From the NCBI GenBank assembly GCA_946965045.2, contig OX337229.1, positions 744,001 through 808,000 on the forward strand: a stretch of 64,000 bases of DNA. The letters are read 5' to 3'. A model generated the notes under the pieces. The model saw only the letters and a list, made by a program, of their open reading frames with translations. It had not been told where the DNA came from and ran no database searches. The position numbers and the translations under genes were made by a program. Shown here one piece after another: positions 13,062-21,278 of this stretch (its first letter is position 1; the number at the start of each line of letters is the position of its first letter). This DNA comes from Epithemia pelagica. Its lineage: Eukaryota > Protista > Bacillariophyta.

Positions 13062-13238
13062 CCTCTATAGTCTCTTGTTGTTGTTTTTATGTTGCTGCCA
13101 CACCATTGTGAGAAAGGGGGCAACTTCCGTTTCCAGTCGCGCCAAAAAAGCATGACGCCACACGTCATGAAGCAATCGCGAATTGTTTGCGTGCCATGCC
13201 ACAGGAATCGTCATGTCTCGTGTGACAAAAACCAAAGA

Positions 13239-13248
13239 AGAGAACCAG
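13239..13248. repeat. 10-bp target-site duplication AGAGAACCAG (left copy; right copy 21065-21074)
   Basis: Identical decamer directly outside both TIRs. Confidence 0.95.
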
Positions 13249-13350
13249 TACCCCCTAGCGGAAGGGTGAGTCCAGGTCGTGAATGAGAGTTTGTGCATTC
13301 TGTAACTCACCCCCAAGGCGCCATCGCGCTCACTCGACTTTGACACAAAC
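13249..13350 (+). repeat. Left TIR (13249-13279 perfect; imperfect to about 13350)
   Basis: The blocks CATTCTG..ACTCACCCCCAAGGCGC and TCGACTTTGACACAAAC also match the reverse complement of 20953-21064. Confidence 0.93.
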
Positions 13351-13413
13351 CCAAAATTTCATCTCACACATTCACTGCATCCACCACGGTGGGTGGAGGT
13401 GCAACCCTCTACC

Positions 13414-16400
13414 ATGCCATCGTCCAAGTCTTCTTCATCACACAAGCGACGCCGTCGGTCCCAGCACGATGTTAGAGAGGCCTACGGTGCTCCCGCCACC
13501 AAGGAAACGTCGATACCAAGCAGTGTTGGAGGCACTACTAACGGCAACCCATCTATCGCCGAAATTGAACCAGAAGCATCTTCCATCTCCCAACCACCCC
13601 TTGATCCTCCTTCGAACGATCCTCGCGATGATGATGCCAGTGATTATTTGCAGTATCCCGACGTTCCTGATCAAATGGATTCAAGTGACGAGGAGGACGA
13701 GGAGAAAGACGAACACCAAACTCCGAACAACAGAGCATTTCCCACCATTGCTCAACAACAAGACAACCTCAACAATAACTCCGAACCGTCCACCTTTCTT
13801 GCCAGTGTGGCGGCCAGTGACTTGTCCACCAGCCTTCCCTCAACCTCCGATCGCAGTAGCAAGCCTCCTCCCCCGCCTCCTCCCCAAAACACTTCATTCT
13901 CGGCTGCCTTTCCCTTAGCGAATGTGGCTTCTCCGTCCAATAACCTCCCAGCAACATCCAGGCCTCCTTCCAATACGACAACCTTGCCACCCTCCTCGAC
14001 CAATACGAGGGTTTCGTCTTTTAATTTCAATGTTTGGCACCGGCAGTACTCTTCGGGCTCGCTGCAATATGGAACACAATCATCTCCACAAAAATCCCTC
14101 AATCTCCTCCCTGCCATTGAAGGACAAGCCAACGCCACAACGTCCATAGCCAATCCAACCACCAACCCGCCCTCCCGTTCCCCCAGCGCCTCCCTCCCTA
14201 CCATGGTACCTACCCAACCTTCTGTCCCGGAGGATACCACCCAAGACCCTGTTGCGGCCGCTCCTCTTGGTCTTACTCGCGCTGTTGGAACTCGCAAGCC
14301 TCCTCCTCTGAACCTAAAGACACTACTACCCGACGTTGGTCCCGGTTCGTTCTTGATCAAACTCCGTCGTCTTGATCCCTTCTATTGCAAAAACCCAGGT
14401 CCCTCGTCGACCAACACTCCATTGGTCACTGTGGCTGCCAACCATTCCGAAAACGCAAAGTCACCCCTCTCATTGGTGAAGAATCATTGCGCTCTCCTAA
14501 TGAAAAGGGCCAAGAACTACACTTCCGGCATTACACGTTCTCCGACTGGTGTCATGAAGCAACGTCGGTTCCAATCGAATACAAGCAACAAACGAAAGCA
14601 CAGTGAAACCATGACGACTGGTCCCGAAGTGGATCAAACCAGCAACAATCCAACTAATTCGGAAACCCATTCGCAATTACAAGTTGTTACGTCCTTTGCT
14701 TTGCGAACCTTGCTACTCGAAGACGTCTGGTTCCTAGAGGAAGGGTCAGCCGTCGTTCTTTTCTTCCACACCGACAGCCTTCCACCAAGATATTCCAAAA
14801 AGTGGTTGGAGGTCGCTGATGACACACAACAATCACATTGTATGCCTACTGTGCAATGTCAGGGCCGCCAATATCAGCAACTAACTGGATGGGTGCACAA
14901 AAACGGCGCTAAAAAACAGTTTGACGGTCCTCAAACCTACGAGCAAATCATAGCGGCGTTACAAGAATTCCCACAGAATGGCATACACATCAAGTTTCCC
15001 ATGCTTTCGGAAGGCGAGACTTTAAGTTTAACAAGCCCACCGGACGACTGCACGCTGAAACTACTGACATGGTTCGAATTGTTCCAGTTTCCACAAAGTA
15101 TCTTTCTTCAATCAGACTACCACCCAGAACGAAATTGGCTCGCAACCTTCAAGTCCATGAAGGATAACGGTGACGACCGGGCAACCTTGCTCCATCGTCT
15201 TGTTCAAGAGACACCGGGTGATAGGTTTATGCTCGCTGAGTTAAAGGGTGTTTGGGACCGCTGTGACCTCAAACAAACAAAAGAGATTCTACGTGAGGCA
15301 CATCTTAGAGAAATCAAAGCTGTCCGTGACGAAATGGCGGCCGCTCCGCCTCCCCCCTTCATTGAACCTGATGTCATCAAGCCATTCTGCGAATTTGTGG
15401 ACAAGCATCTCCTTCAGCGATTGGAAGACTGCTTCGGTCGGTTTACAAACATCTTTGACAAGTTCATTTCTGAATCCGAGTTGCGAATATTGGCCAAGGA
15501 GTTCGAGAGACAACTGCCTGATCACTTCAAGACCCTCATGGGCCTAAGTGGCTATACACAGCGCCTAGAAATCCTTGACTCCCCCAATACAAAGACCAAG
15601 CCCGGTCATGCCCAGATGCTCCGTCTTCGATACTCCTTGGATGTGTTTTTCCAGTTCGTCAATCGTGCTCGCAAACATAACAACCATCGCATGGTTCCGT
15701 TCGGCCTTATCTTTGCTCTCGCCCAATATGCCTGCGGCCATCCATTACTTGCTACGCAAATTCCAGTATGGATGGGATGGTCGGTTTCAAAACGAACCAT
15801 GGAGCGTCGGATTGAGCCATTCATTCATTCATACGACAACAAAATCAAGCGGGCCATCCGACGCTGTACCAGCTTGCTGTGCGTATTCGATAACCTACAA
15901 GACGGACGCAAGCTACAATTCCAGAGTGGTCAAAGCTCTGTATTCACCAGAGTTACCGCAAGATTCATCATGACGATGTATTTATCAAACTTCCCGGACT
16001 GGGTATACACTTTCCAGCAGCGTCCTGCATTAACCTTCATCCAACAATCCATACCCTCACCTTATAACATGCCTACGTTTGAATTGGAACCTCCGGAGAG
16101 TACAATGTACACGATCCTAAGTTCCGTTTGCCATGGGACATTCCAAACCGATACCAACCCGAACGGAAACCCATTCGATTGTTCCGGGAAACGTGTCCGG
16201 TATTACCAGGAACTTCGATCCTGTTGCAGAGAGTTGGACATTGTGAGGCGCTACCTTTCCACCAAGCGCAAGATTGGCCACATGGCAATAGACTACACCT
16301 TACAACCAACCGAATTTGCCAAAAACCCCATTCGTCACGCCGTGGCCAAAGCCATGCACAACCTTCGGAAAAACCGGAATGCCAATCTATTTGCGTTGGC

Positions 16401-18669
16401 AAAGCAGTTCCCTTCCAAAGTAGTGCAAACATGGCGGGCAGAACCACCTGTCGCCGAGTTACTCATATTACCAGTCTCGGTGTTGGACGAGACCACGAAG
16501 ACGGGCGCTTCCGGTATCGTTATCGACTTCATGGTTCTTCACGGCCTACTTGAGTGGGACGACAGTACCCAGATGTATCAACCACGAGAAGGATGGGACG
16601 AGAAGTGGTTGTTCATTGTTGGTGATGGTCTATCCCTCGAACGCATTTTCCAATTCCTAGACGACATAATGGGAATACTGGATTCCAAATTGGTATCCTT
16701 CAGGCACGCCTATCGTCAGGCAATGAACATTGCACAAGTGGTGCACCGCCTTGTCCCCATCAATGGAGATTTACACGTCCGGTTCCATATGTTGGACGTT
16801 GTTTACCGCTTATTCTATGGCGGATTCCTACAAGTCATGCAATGGCGTCTACAGTGGAAAAGACTTGATCCCTACGACGTTTCCAATAGTTACCGCTTGT
16901 GCCATCGATTGGCAGTTGTTGTCTACGAAGAGGTCCAACGCATCATGCTCGACCTCTATCTATTAAAAAAAATGACCATGAGCAGGTTTGATGAAATGAT
17001 GCACTTTGGTGGTGCTGAGGCCGTCGCTGTATACATTGCGAAGGACTATCTCGATTACTTGAATCGTCAAGTACGAGAATCCAAGGACTGGTTGTTACGA
17101 TTTCTTTGTAACTTCCTACTCCTTATGCGTAAATACTTGACATTCTTGGAGGCAGAACAACAAGGAGACAGCGTCACGATGGAAGCGGTCATCGTAGAAT
17201 ATCTGCCCTTTTGGTTTATAACAAAGAAGAAGGTCTCATTCAACAATCAATTGCGGTTGATTGAGTTGTATTACAACCGGTTGCCAATCTCGGTCCTCCA
17301 ACAGATACGAATCAACCGAACCAAACGCCAGAAACCAGGTAGCACTCCGTCCATGTACATTAAAGAGAGCGCCCTTGATCAGATTATGGAAAGGCTCATG
17401 CCTTTCTTTAAGGGCATGAGCCACAATGGAACAGAAGAGGCCTTCGTTAAAGTGTCAAAGATGCTTACCGCCTGCCAAAGGGCTAAGCACTTTGTAGAGT
17501 TCTATACGAGGCAACGATCCGACGCGGAGTACGAACTATCTGAGAGAGACATGGAAGAAGGAGGAGCGTCACAAAGTCCATTGGTGGATCCTGGTCAACG
17601 GAACAAAAAAACGACCTCACCTTCAAGTCGTCTGAACAGAGTGCTCGTAACGGAAATTCTTACTTTGGCGAAATGCCACAAGGTGCAACCGGAGAAACCG
17701 TCCATCATGGACGAAGACTGCTTTTGGAGAGCGTTAGATGAGACGTCGCTCGAAGTTCACAAAAAGGTATCGCGATTGGGAGACGGTAAAGTGGACAATG
17801 ACGCGACGGATAAGTATGTGATGGTGCAAGTAAACAAAATGATGAGCGGTCTTTCGAAGAGACGGGCAGTCAGTAATGAGAACGGAGAGGAACCTTCCAA
17901 TCCGGAAATGAACAATGATGACACTGATGACAATGATGCGAATGACGACGATAGCACGGTCGTTGATATCGCAGAGGAGATGAAGGATATAGACGACGAC
18001 GGGTCAACGGTTTTTGATGACGTGTCTTACTTCTCCGACAACGAGCCGCCTGTAGTTACCATTGAGAGTGACCCGGTATTGTATGGCACTCAACCAGATA
18101 CCGTGATGGAGAAGGTGAGCACAGTAGGAGAGGATGATGAAGAAGATGCTGATGGCAATTCAATAACAAACGAGACAGAGGATGAAGAATTAGCAGAGAC
18201 ACAGATTGAAGATGTTGTATTGGCAGCAGCAGACGAAATGGTAGGAGACGAGGCACAAGACGACGGAGAAGACGACAACGACGAGGAAATAGAAAGGGAT
18301 GAAACGGATGAAAAGAAAGCCGAGAAGAAGGATGACAGGCCAAAACCGGTGATGAAAGGAAAGGTAAAGGGAATGAAGGTTGCAAGCATGAACCCCATCG
18401 CTTCAGTGGATATCCTTGCAAGAGCCCTACATGATATGGCTGAGAAGAACGTAGTTAACGCAAGGCAGCGTGATTCCGACAGAAAAGAAAGAGAACAACA
18501 CTTTCTCCGGTTGAACCTATATAATCGATTGCAAGCGATGGAAGAGGAAGCGGTTGGTATGGATTGGGGTCAAGACGATGTGCTGATGGAAGAGGATGCC
18601 GAAAAAGAAAAGCAATTGGACGAGGCACTAGCTTTATTCGCCCAATTCAAGGAAGGTGTTGAAGAGTAG
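13414..18669 (+). CDS. Putative Academ-type transposase (DUF6589-like core)
   Basis: Uninterrupted ORF of about 1750 aa inside the TIRs. Motifs VFDNLQ, LDETTKTG, IVGDGLS, GDLHVRFHM, ALDQIMERL; basic N-terminal HKRRRRS; acidic C-terminal tail. Confidence 0.75.
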   Translation: MPSSKSSSSHKRRRRSQHDVREAYGAPATKETSIPSSVGGTTNGNPSIAEIEPEASSISQPPLDPPSNDPRDDDASDYLQYPDVPDQMDSSDEEDEEKDEHQTPNNRAFPTIAQQQDNLNNNSEPSTFLASVAASDLSTSLPSTSDRSSKPPPPPPPQNTSFSAAFPLANVASPSNNLPATSRPPSNTTTLPPSSTNTRVSSFNFNVWHRQYSSGSLQYGTQSSPQKSLNLLPAIEGQANATTSIANPTTNPPSRSPSASLPTMVPTQPSVPEDTTQDPVAAAPLGLTRAVGTRKPPPLNLKTLLPDVGPGSFLIKLRRLDPFYCKNPGPSSTNTPLVTVAANHSENAKSPLSLVKNHCALLMKRAKNYTSGITRSPTGVMKQRRFQSNTSNKRKHSETMTTGPEVDQTSNNPTNSETHSQLQVVTSFALRTLLLEDVWFLEEGSAVVLFFHTDSLPPRYSKKWLEVADDTQQSHCMPTVQCQGRQYQQLTGWVHKNGAKKQFDGPQTYEQIIAALQEFPQNGIHIKFPMLSEGETLSLTSPPDDCTLKLLTWFELFQFPQSIFLQSDYHPERNWLATFKSMKDNGDDRATLLHRLVQETPGDRFMLAELKGVWDRCDLKQTKEILREAHLREIKAVRDEMAAAPPPPFIEPDVIKPFCEFVDKHLLQRLEDCFGRFTNIFDKFISESELRILAKEFERQLPDHFKTLMGLSGYTQRLEILDSPNTKTKPGHAQMLRLRYSLDVFFQFVNRARKHNNHRMVPFGLIFALAQYACGHPLLATQIPVWMGWSVSKRTMERRIEPFIHSYDNKIKRAIRRCTSLLCVFDNLQDGRKLQFQSGQSSVFTRVTARFIMTMYLSNFPDWVYTFQQRPALTFIQQSIPSPYNMPTFELEPPESTMYTILSSVCHGTFQTDTNPNGNPFDCSGKRVRYYQELRSCCRELDIVRRYLSTKRKIGHMAIDYTLQPTEFAKNPIRHAVAKAMHNLRKNRNANLFALAKQFPSKVVQTWRAEPPVAELLILPVSVLDETTKTGASGIVIDFMVLHGLLEWDDSTQMYQPREGWDEKWLFIVGDGLSLERIFQFLDDIMGILDSKLVSFRHAYRQAMNIAQVVHRLVPINGDLHVRFHMLDVVYRLFYGGFLQVMQWRLQWKRLDPYDVSNSYRLCHRLAVVVYEEVQRIMLDLYLLKKMTMSRFDEMMHFGGAEAVAVYIAKDYLDYLNRQVRESKDWLLRFLCNFLLLMRKYLTFLEAEQQGDSVTMEAVIVEYLPFWFITKKKVSFNNQLRLIELYYNRLPISVLQQIRINRTKRQKPGSTPSMYIKESALDQIMERLMPFFKGMSHNGTEEAFVKVSKMLTACQRAKHFVEFYTRQRSDAEYELSERDMEEGGASQSPLVDPGQRNKKTTSPSSRLNRVLVTEILTLAKCHKVQPEKPSIMDEDCFWRALDETSLEVHKKVSRLGDGKVDNDATDKYVMVQVNKMMSGLSKRRAVSNENGEEPSNPEMNNDDTDDNDANDDDSTVVDIAEEMKDIDDDGSTVFDDVSYFSDNEPPVVTIESDPVLYGTQPDTVMEKVSTVGEDDEEDADGNSITNETEDEELAETQIEDVVLAAADEMVGDEAQDDGEDDNDEEIERDETDEKKAEKKDDRPKPVMKGKVKGMKVASMNPIASVDILARALHDMAEKNVVNARQRDSDRKEREQHFLRLNLYNRLQAMEEEAVGMDWGQDDVLMEEDAEKEKQLDEALALFAQFKEGVEE

Positions 18670-18705
18670 TGCTAGGCAGACGTAACAAATAAGAATTAGT
18701 AGTAT

Positions 18706-20892
18706 TTATTTCTTTGGAGACAGTACTTTAAAGCCATTCCATGCACCAGGAGCATTAAGACGAGGGTTTCCGTCATTGTTATAGCCAAGCTTCACACGTA
18801 GTTGAATACCGTCCACATCTGGTTCCAAAATACGCGCGCAAAAACACTTGAGGATCAAGGCTTTGGCACGCTGTCGAACAGACCGATTTGTGGTGATTCC
18901 CATGACAGCTTTGGGAAAGGCTTTGATGGGTTTCCCACCCGGTCCAGGCGTTGGAAACGAAAGCAATGCATCTAAGAACACATCCTTGTGAAGCAACAAC
19001 TGTGCGGGAGAAAGTTTCTCCGTTATGAACATGCGGACAAGATACTGTTTGAAGGTATCGATGTTGATGGGAGCATCGAGCGGATTAGAAATGCGGGGAT
19101 TAGCGCATTGCCAGCATGCTCCCCCACATGAAGGAGGAAGGTCGCAGATTGATTCTTTGTTTGGGTGCATCAATAATTGCTCCATCGCAAAATGAACGCA
19201 ACGTCCGTCGTCAATGCAGATAAGGGACAGGACATTGCGGGCGCGCTCCCATTGACGCTGAGCTAAGGCCGATTGTGACAGCAAGGCCGACTGTGATGTC
19301 GTGGCCCTGTCGTTGGAACGTTCAGTTTCGGGTTGTGCGTTGTTTGTCTTGTTCTGTCGAGCACTTGCCTTTGCCGCCTCATACTTAGGTATGATGAAGA
19401 TGCGAGTTAATAAAGAAACCATGCTGTTTAAAGATGCAATGATGGTGAATCGAGATGTGTTGTAGGTGGCGTCGGGGCTACGTCCACATCGGCCAGAGCA
19501 TTGCAGTAGGTCTTCATTGGTCTGCGGAAAACCATGAAAAAGGACCTGATCTACTTCCGGACAATCAATACCGGAGCTCGTTGCACCCGCAGTGGCGAAG
19601 AAGGCGACAGGATCGAAGCGTAGCGTCCGACGGGTGGTCGGGCAGTCCTCCATCAGAGGCTTTCCGACGAAAAGATCGGTATTGTGGAACTTCTGTTCCC
19701 GGTACATGTTTCCATGTACCAATACCAGATCTTTGTCCACACGTCGTATATTCAACTCATGGCGACACTTCTCGTAAAGGTTGATGATAGCTTTACGAGA
19801 GTTCGAATGCACCATGAGTTTACGACCGTTTGGCGAGCGACTTGTCTTGATAAGTTCTCGCTTGATTTTGCGAATAGGGGTATCTTGAAACGTGATGTCA
19901 ATGAAGACATTGCGGCGGTGGACACCAGAGTGTTGGTGAGGCCACATAAGATCGTCGTCTTTGTCGAATTGTAGGCCGGTAAGAGATTCAAGATCCGAAA
20001 GCATTTCGGACGAGGCTGTGGCTGTCATGAAAAGAATTGGGGTTGGTACTGAGGCATGCCGCTTGGCCATTTGGAAGAGAATGGCTCGTAGGTCGCCAAA
20101 CTCTTCGCGAAACTCTCGGCCATGCGACGCATAGAGATGGCATTCGTCCACACTGATGAACCGCATCAAGCCACGTCGAAAGCACGTAACAAGAGTCTGT
20201 TGCCATGATGGGTCTCTCGTCAATTTCTGTGGCGATGAAAACAAGGAGACTGTGACCTTGGATTCTCGTGGCAACGACTCCAGATTGCGTCGCAGTAACT
20301 CGTTGATTGGTGGGGAGCGAATGACATCCAAGTTGTAGACTTTCAGACGACGCTTGAGGCCTTGTGTTGCCGACAAAGCAACAAGTTTAGAAGTCTGGTC
20401 CGCTGCCAAACTCAACAGAGGAACGATGGTGATGGTTATGCCTCCAGAAAGGAAACCACACACATCTCGTACGGCAGATTTGCCACCACCAGTGGAGCGG
20501 ACGAGGAGAATTGGACGGAGAGGCGAGGAAGGAAGGCGGTGGACAGTACGCATCATTACTTGTTGGCAGGCATCCACTTGCCACGGTCGGGCGGTCTTGC
20601 CATGCCAAGCTTGGAAAGCAGTCTTTATGGCTTGTTGTAGCTTCTGTGACGCTGGACTTAGGGGAGGAGGCGGTTGAGGGACAAGGGAAGCAACGGGGAT
20701 ATGGGAGTAGGGAGGTAGAAGGTCTTCGGATGAGGGGTCATCCGTTTGCCTGGTGTTGGATGCCCTGGTACTTCCATCGTAAGTAGGAATATTGCGACTG
20801 GAAGCGTCAATTGGTTCGATATCATGGCCAGCTGTGTCCCTTGGGTGGTTAGAGACAGCAGGAACAAAGCGGATCTGTTTGGGAGGGGCCAT
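18706..20892 (-). CDS. Element-encoded RecQ-like SF2 helicase
   Basis: RPWQ (motif 0), STGGGKS (I), TIVPLLSL (Ia), DECH (II), HGREFR aromatic loop, MTATA (III), SGID (V), QCSGRCGR (VI), Cys/His Zn-binding region C..CVH..CGGACWQC. Confidence 0.92.
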   Translation of the reverse strand: MAPPKQIRFVPAVSNHPRDTAGHDIEPIDASSRNIPTYDGSTRASNTRQTDDPSSEDLLPPYSHIPVASLVPQPPPPLSPASQKLQQAIKTAFQAWHGKTARPWQVDACQQVMMRTVHRLPSSPLRPILLVRSTGGGKSAVRDVCGFLSGGITITIVPLLSLAADQTSKLVALSATQGLKRRLKVYNLDVIRSPPINELLRRNLESLPRESKVTVSLFSSPQKLTRDPSWQQTLVTCFRRGLMRFISVDECHLYASHGREFREEFGDLRAILFQMAKRHASVPTPILFMTATASSEMLSDLESLTGLQFDKDDDLMWPHQHSGVHRRNVFIDITFQDTPIRKIKRELIKTSRSPNGRKLMVHSNSRKAIINLYEKCRHELNIRRVDKDLVLVHGNMYREQKFHNTDLFVGKPLMEDCPTTRRTLRFDPVAFFATAGATSSGIDCPEVDQVLFHGFPQTNEDLLQCSGRCGRSPDATYNTSRFTIIASLNSMVSLLTRIFIIPKYEAAKASARQNKTNNAQPETERSNDRATTSQSALLSQSALAQRQWERARNVLSLICIDDGRCVHFAMEQLLMHPNKESICDLPPSCGGACWQCANPRISNPLDAPINIDTFKQYLVRMFITEKLSPAQLLLHKDVFLDALLSFPTPGPGGKPIKAFPKAVMGITTNRSVRQRAKALILKCFCARILEPDVDGIQLRVKLGYNNDGNPRLNAPGAWNGFKVLSPKK

Positions 20893-20952
20893 GGGTGATG
20901 TTACAACCACAACAAGATGGGTCTCGTAGTGATTGCGTTGTGGTGTTGGTGA

Positions 20953-21064
20953 GTTTGTGTCAAAGTCGAAAAATCGCCGATTTTGAGAATCGCGCCTTGG
21001 GGGTGAGTATCAGAATGCTCTTTGTCTGTCTGTCGACCTGGACTCACCCTTCCGCTAGGGGGTA
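20953..21064 (-). repeat. Right TIR (21034-21064 perfect)
   Basis: Exact reverse complement of 13249-13279. Confidence 0.93.
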
Positions 21065-21278
21065 AGAGAACCAGATCATGTGAGGTTGTATATGCACCTA
21101 TGCTGACATCACCTACTCTCCATCTTACTCTCGATTCACAAGATTCCTCCTCGTTCCATACGATTCATTCTTCCAATTTATGTTCCGCATCATCTTACGT
21201 GAAATGTTCCGTATCAAGTTCCGTATAAAGCTCACAATTTCGAAAACATACAGATCTCAGATCACTTTCCAAACGACC

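Follow-up and report, generated by a model that had tools for sequence, protein, structure and literature searches.

A window of 64,000 nucleotides from the diatom Epithemia pelagica (GenBank assembly GCA_946965045.2, contig OX337229.1, positions 744,001 to 808,000 of the forward strand; contig ctg1342l of assembly ERZ21939226) contains, at window positions 13249-21064, what is very probably a complete, autonomous and recently inserted DNA transposon of 7.8 kb, bounded by terminal inverted repeats (TIRs) and belonging to the AcademH type. It carries two convergent open reading frames (ORFs), of which ORF1 encodes a putative DDE transposase and ORF2 a putative RecQ-like helicase. A preliminary description, made from the sequence of the window, had proposed that this was a stramenopile AcademH lineage and the best candidate for an undescribed system in the window. 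The assignment to AcademH is supported by the target-site duplications (TSDs), the helicase and the DDE core of the transposase, with DUF6589 as a proxy for Academ. The term "undescribed system" was too strong, since the element belongs to a known transposon group and its only novelty is the host.

The ends of the element were delimited by sequence reading and by a repeat search, which agree on two termini of 31 nucleotides that are perfect reverse complements of each other and start with 5'-TA. A pattern search with this end found two copies in the window, both of them at the element termini, and none in 100 shuffles. Beyond the 31 nucleotides the inverted repeat becomes imperfect and reaches 76 nucleotides at 83%, and a further inverted block of 20 nucleotides is found at 13334-13353 and 20950-20969. 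The terminal motif ACCCCCNAG is present again 60 bp inward at both ends (motif positions 2 and 61 of each end), and this subterminal copy is a candidate second binding site for the transposase. Directly abutting both ends is the 10-mer AGAGAACCAG, a perfect target duplication. The TIRs with TA ends and the 10-bp TSD of the preliminary description were confirmed by these searches. Its two uninterrupted tail-to-tail ORFs of about 1750 and 730 amino acids, separated by 36 bp, were borne out as well, with likely start codons as the sole corrections: the frame of ORF1 is open from a GTG at 13393 to 18669 (1758 codons) and that of ORF2, on the minus strand, from a GTG at 20910 to 18706 (734 codons), the likely ATG starts being located at 13414 and 20892.

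Recent movement of the element is best documented by its absence from a matching site. The counterpart of the region, collinear in its genes and 97-98% identical, lies on contig ctg1269l (L012, L014), which is probably the other haplotype. This contig was reached via an eIF2-gamma gene located 10 kb away; an exact-protein look-up of the two flanking genes gave matches confined to the window's own contig. On ctg1269l the complement of AGAGAACCAG occurs once, at L014 2653-2662 (reverse strand), between the same flanks and with no element. As the 10-mer is single at the empty site, the duplication was made by the insertion of this very element, and the absence of the element from the second copy of the site indicates that it moved recently. 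Since the element of the window and its nearest copy differ by only 0.8%, the insertion would seem to be more recent than the divergence of the two matching contigs, which amounts to 2-3%. An empty-site contig was not found in the read-derived contigs of four runs.

Additional copies are present in the same assembly. The nearest one (L001, contig ctg1332l) differs by 64 substitutions and 0 indels over 7817 bp (99.18% identity); it has the same 31-bp ends, and the 10-bp duplication at its flanks, CTAGGTGGTG, is not that of the window element. The transposase ORF of this copy is intact, and its helicase is split into pieces of 409 and 315 amino acids by a GGA to TGA nonsense mutation at the equivalent of window position 19665. 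Sister subfamilies with 47-53% ORF1 identity harbor the same two convergent genes and share the terminal motif TACCCCC...GGGTGAG (L003, L004/L005, L006), with TSDs of 9 bp in L003 (TGAGTCCAT) and in L006 (TTGGTTGCT). Two sister-subfamily copies located on different contigs (L004 5829-13637 and L005 5829-13637) are 100% identical over 7809 bp, which implies very recent movement of the superfamily within this genome. Their 9-bp flanks are swapped, AATGGAGCG being to the left and AGTGACCGG to the right of the element in L004 and the other way round in L005, which reflects either a reciprocal exchange of two insertions or an assembler switch within the repeat. The terminus was found joined to at least four other flanks in the read-derived contigs of three runs. 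In these contigs (window 13200-13400) the terminal 150 bp or so were recovered at 20-30x the word depth of the flank, the element body at about 1.5x, which suggests that ends far outnumber full-length bodies, possibly in the form of short non-autonomous derivatives. The recent insertion advanced in the preliminary description is in agreement with the near-identical second copy and with the empty site, where AGAGAACCAG is single and without an element, and the other TIR-bounded copies with different 9-10 bp TSDs that it predicted are those of L001, L003 and L006, together with the swapped 9-mers of L004/L005.

The insertion could be young and the copy of the window nevertheless immobile, either silenced or dependent on factors lost from the strain. 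This is unlikely in our opinion, but it keeps an appreciable chance, as the nearest copy already has a helicase nonsense mutation, one run (X4) has related sequence for the first 1.1 kb only, and the read-derived contigs gave no usable expression signal. On the other side, both ORFs are open, the ends and the TSD show no mismatch, the matching contig lacks the insertion, and a sister subfamily has left two identical copies at different loci.

The differences between the copy of the window and L001 are informative on the history of the two genes. Forty of the 64 differences fall in ORF1 (24 synonymous and 16 non-synonymous; ratio of the proportions of non-synonymous and synonymous differences, pN/pS, 0.19; binomial p 2e-7) and 21 in ORF2 (10 synonymous and 11 non-synonymous, including the L001 nonsense mutation; pN/pS 0.35, p 0.015). 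On these counts both genes, the helicase as well as the transposase, are under purifying selection. Such a pattern implies that most of the differences arose in functional, transposing lineages and not by decay after insertion.

Based on its sequence and modelled fold, ORF1 is predicted to encode a DDE/RNase-H-like transposase of the DUF6589 family. The large ORF had been expected to resemble DUF6589, and this was its only Pfam match, at 23.2 bits for a cut-off of 27; several distant relatives of ORF1 pass this cut-off with 28-41 bits. A profile of the conserved ORF1 region (A1, nine family members) was searched against a library of 1.8 billion proteins and matched 755 of them at E <= 0.001 and 91 at E <= 1e-30, and a profile word-index search found no named relatives. 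Identity of ORF1 to animal, fungal and metagenomic DUF6589 relatives is about 19-30%. DUF6589 folds from AFDB match the ORF1 model at probability 1.0. The core of the protein is confidently modelled and adopts an RNase-H-like fold resembling those of DDE transposases and integrases, with integrase-core alignments covering model residues 190 to about 725.

Four parts can be distinguished in the ORF1 protein: a low-complexity N-terminal part of about 470 amino acids, a family-conserved region (amino acids 470-630), a DDE RNase-H-like core with a large helical insertion (amino acids 820 to 1330, approximately) and an acidic tail. D826, D1071 and E1326 form an invariant acidic triad at the strand and helix positions expected from the fold, as in the DDE core that characterizes AcademH, and their codons were checked at the coordinates of Table 1. 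Between the second aspartate and the glutamate lies the conserved motif GDLH (DxH). No Pfam match to XPG was obtained for ORF1 or for the 14 distant relatives that were scanned, and neither THAP nor P-element families matched ORF1 at E 0.01. The gene caller of the assembly begins ORF1 at an internal methionine (1488 amino acids); the long form is more likely, because the N-terminal 260 amino acids align with the sister subfamilies. Two smaller ORFs, of 211 amino acids (13283-13918, plus strand) and 202 amino acids (13752-14360, minus strand), overlap the low-complexity N-terminal part.

ORF2 is predicted to encode a RecQ-fold helicase with all motor motifs intact. Its Pfam matches are DEAD and Helicase_C, and a sequence search of PDB returned RecQ-family chains only, the best at 9e-12. 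The structural model (predicted local distance difference test, pLDDT, 79.1) gave RecQ-family proteins as all 50 of its 50 best PDB folds (RECQL5, BLM, RECQ1, bacterial RecQ and WRN), with E values between 2e-18 and 3e-14 and with alignments of 520-680 columns that extend into the RecQ C-terminal region. RecQ_Zn_bind was not detected in the Pfam sequence scan of ORF2, and no HRDC domain was seen in it. Identity to cellular RecQ is about 26% over some 200 amino acids, in the first lobe only. A maximum-likelihood tree was built with three cellular RecQ-like proteins and 16 rows comprising eight helicases from elements of this assembly, five metagenomic relatives of undefined context and three helicases adjoining distant DUF6589 transposases. 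The 16 rows and the three cellular ones are split at 100/100 support, in a tree that is indicative only owing to its long branches and small outgroup. ORF2 groups with the DUF6589-linked helicases and apart from the three sampled cellular RecQ proteins, consistent with the earlier suggestion that it is not a host orthologue.

Table 1. Features of the putative AcademH element, in window coordinates.
Feature	Position	Strand	Remark
Left target-site duplication AGAGAACCAG	13239..13248	.	10 bp
Left TIR	13249..13279	+	31 bp perfect, starts 5'-TACCCCC; imperfect repeat up to 13324
Subterminal copy of terminal motif (ACCCCCAAG)	13309..13317	+	60 bp inside end; mirrored at right end
ORF1, putative transposase, 1751 aa from first ATG	13414..18669	+	
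Candidate catalytic D826, motif VFDNLQ	15889..15891	+	on beta-1 of model; D in 33/33 aligned relatives
Candidate catalytic D1071, motif VGDGLS	16624..16626	+	directly after beta-4; 45/45
Candidate catalytic E1326, motif DQIMER	17389..17391	+	helix after helical insertion; 32/32
Spacer between convergent stop codons, 36 bp	18670..18705	.	
ORF2, putative RecQ-fold superfamily-2 helicase, 728 aa from first ATG	18706..20892	-	
Cys cluster CGGACWQC in ORF2	19105-19128	-	intact
QxxGRxGR in ORF2	19480-19503	-	intact
TAT motif in ORF2	20011-20025	-	intact
DECH box in ORF2	20137-20148	-	intact
Walker A GGGKS in ORF2	20476-20490	-	intact
Right TIR, 31 bp	21034..21064	-	identical to left TIR
Right target-site duplication AGAGAACCAG	21065..21074	.	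10 bp

The association of the two genes extends beyond this genome. In each of three distant ORF1 relatives, which have about 20-25% identity and are located on unrelated metagenome contigs (L009/L010, L015/L016 and L017), a convergent DEAD/Helicase_C gene follows directly downstream; the transposase-helicase pairing is an old one. The candidate boundaries of these relatives are diverse. L009 7636-14998 shows two nested inverted repeats, of which the inner one, of 50 bp, lacks a TSD and the outer one (CACACTGTAGTA...) is accompanied by an 8-bp match of the flanks, ACTTACTC; L015 34-7861 has TIRs of about 230 bp without TSD, and the ends of the L017 element run off the contig ends. That the two genes of the window are domesticated host genes, or that a host RecQ gene lies by chance beside a transposase, is extremely improbable. 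Nothing speaks for it beyond the RecQ fold of ORF2, and it is contradicted by the position of the gene pair inside TIRs with a TSD, by the empty site on the matching contig, by the multiple copies at unrelated loci, by the recurrence of the pairing in distant relatives and by the low identity of the helicase to cellular RecQ.

Under a more far-reaching proposal, the elements found here and those related to them in metagenomes would constitute a separate deep branch, in which the association of a DUF6589-type transposase with a RecQ-like helicase predates the split between stramenopiles and the animal-fungal lineage and represents an ancient and mechanistically obligate two-enzyme system. We regard this as rather doubtful. 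If it were true, the hemizygous copy described here would be the first tractable one for testing the role of the helicase in DDE transposition, and the element could be used in its host as an endogenous insertional mutagen.

The AcademH element of the window is inserted in the spacer between two divergent genes, coding for a GT92 glycosyltransferase and a DUF2817 protein. The same spacer contains a solo Copia long terminal repeat (LTR) of 181 bp (window 21079-21259), with the 5-bp TSD GATCA at 21074-21078 and 21260-21264. A full-length Copia from this LTR family, with the TSD TCTTT, occupies L014 2665-9345 of the matching contig in the opposite orientation. Both Copia insertions lie no more than about 15 bp from the Academ target, spanning window 21074-21264 and L014 2653-9350, and the intergenic spacer is a hot spot for transposon insertion, with three independent insertions. 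The DUF2817 ORF of the window (542 amino acids) starts inside the solo LTR; its counterpart on the matching contig has 517 amino acids.

A mechanism can be proposed for the spread of the element. The transposase would bind the terminal motif and the subterminal repeat at each end, pair the ends, cut the element out and join its 3' ends to the target strands at positions offset by 9-10 bp, and gap repair would then yield the 9-10 bp duplication; the mode of excision could be either cut-and-paste or copy-out. The helicase may be a dedicated accessory factor needed for the spread of the element, most likely by opening or remodelling the DNA of the ends or of the target at the stage of assembly or of strand transfer. 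To our knowledge, few groups of DNA transposons have been studied as little as AcademH, and we know of no experimental study of its transposition. An intact, recent copy together with its matching empty site constitutes a clean substrate for investigating the need for the helicase and the origin of the 9-10 bp TSDs. Moreover, if mobile, such an endogenous DNA transposon would be a useful tool for insertional mutagenesis of this host.

The assignment to AcademH is based on the combination of genes and target duplications. AcademH TSDs are of 9 or 10 bp and those of AcademX of 3 or 4 bp, a difference that tracks the presence of a helicase or of a nuclease, according to a summary of Kojima 2020 (Mob DNA 11:15) in PMC10045372. 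Here the TSDs are of 10 bp in the window and in L001 and of 9 bp in L003, L006 and the flanks of L004/L005, as in AcademH. As in AcademH also, a helicase gene is found beside the transposase gene within the TIRs, and the sister subfamilies have the same pairing. Clusters of DUF6589 proteins lie in cnidarians, basidiomycetes, Mucoromycota and molluscs, which are groups with reported Academ elements, and from this distribution DUF6589 may correspond to the Academ transposase core. In the literature searched we found no paper tying DUF6589 or PF20231 to Academ, nor one linking Academ with diatoms. AcademH is recorded from animals and fungi, as stated in the title of Kojima 2020 and in PMC10799480. 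A diatom host would extend this record and would bear on the age of the transposase-helicase partnership; the classification of such elements is unchanged by the finding.

Several points weigh against the classification as a functional AcademH element. The DUF6589 score of ORF1 itself is under the Pfam cut-off, the helicase tree has long branches and just three cellular RecQ rows, and no usable expression signal was found in the read-derived contigs of four runs, for which the kind of library is not specified. The role given to the helicase is conjectural, and the Academ label rests on TSD length, gene content and DUF6589 as a proxy. These elements could in principle represent a separate, unnamed DUF6589-type DDE superfamily with a helicase that resembles AcademH in gene content and TSD length by convergence and is unrelated to the Academ of Repbase, a possibility to which the comparison with AcademH by description only, the 19-30% identity to non-diatom relatives and the sub-threshold Pfam score lend some weight. 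It would require three coincidences, namely the helicase partner, the 9-10 bp TSDs and the occurrence of DUF6589 in the animal and fungal groups that bear Academ, and we consider it improbable.

Kolobok transposons, the only other superfamily to be considered seriously, share with the present element the association of a DDE transposon with a RecQ-type helicase. Kolobok lineages carrying RecQ are known, such as KolobokH in fungi and Kolobok-1_CCri in a red alga, the latter with its helicase on the complementary strand, and Kolobok has been reported from the diatom Fragilariopsis (PMC9587614). Additionally, DUF6589 alone cannot separate Kolobok from Academ, because neither of them had a Pfam model in 2017 (PMC5751038). 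Kolobok elements are characterized by a TTAA-specific 4-bp TSD, 5'-RR...YY-3' termini and a C/DxxH signature (PMC9587614), whereas the duplications found here are of 9-10 bp and none is TTAA, the termini are 5'-TA...TA-3', and the motif is GDLH (DxH). TSD, termini and signature exclude a Kolobok, and we hold a RecQ-carrying member of that group to be very improbable here.

The element was compared with other known systems as well. The transposase of the P element (PDB 6p5a) resembles ORF1 by its fold alone, with no sequence similarity. P elements make an 8-bp TSD and have no helicase partner. Membership in the P element superfamily was rejected given the TSDs of 9-10 bp and the lack of a THAP or P-element Pfam match. 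ORF2 shares its fold and all motor motifs with cellular RecQ proteins (RECQL5, BLM, RECQ1 and bacterial RecQ) but differs from them by its low identity, limited to the first lobe, and by its separation in the tree from the three that were sampled. AcademX, in which Kojima is said to have described in 2020 an XPG nuclease fused to the transposase, presumably belongs to the same transposase superfamily; it differs by its TSD of 3-4 bp and its XPG domain, for which no Pfam match was found here. From AcademH, with which it was compared by description, the element differs by its host, a diatom instead of animals and fungi. It shares with AcademH a large DDE transposase, a separate gene for a superfamily-2 RecQ-like helicase, TIRs and TSDs of 9-10 bp, as well as a low copy number and the presence of several divergent families in the same genome.

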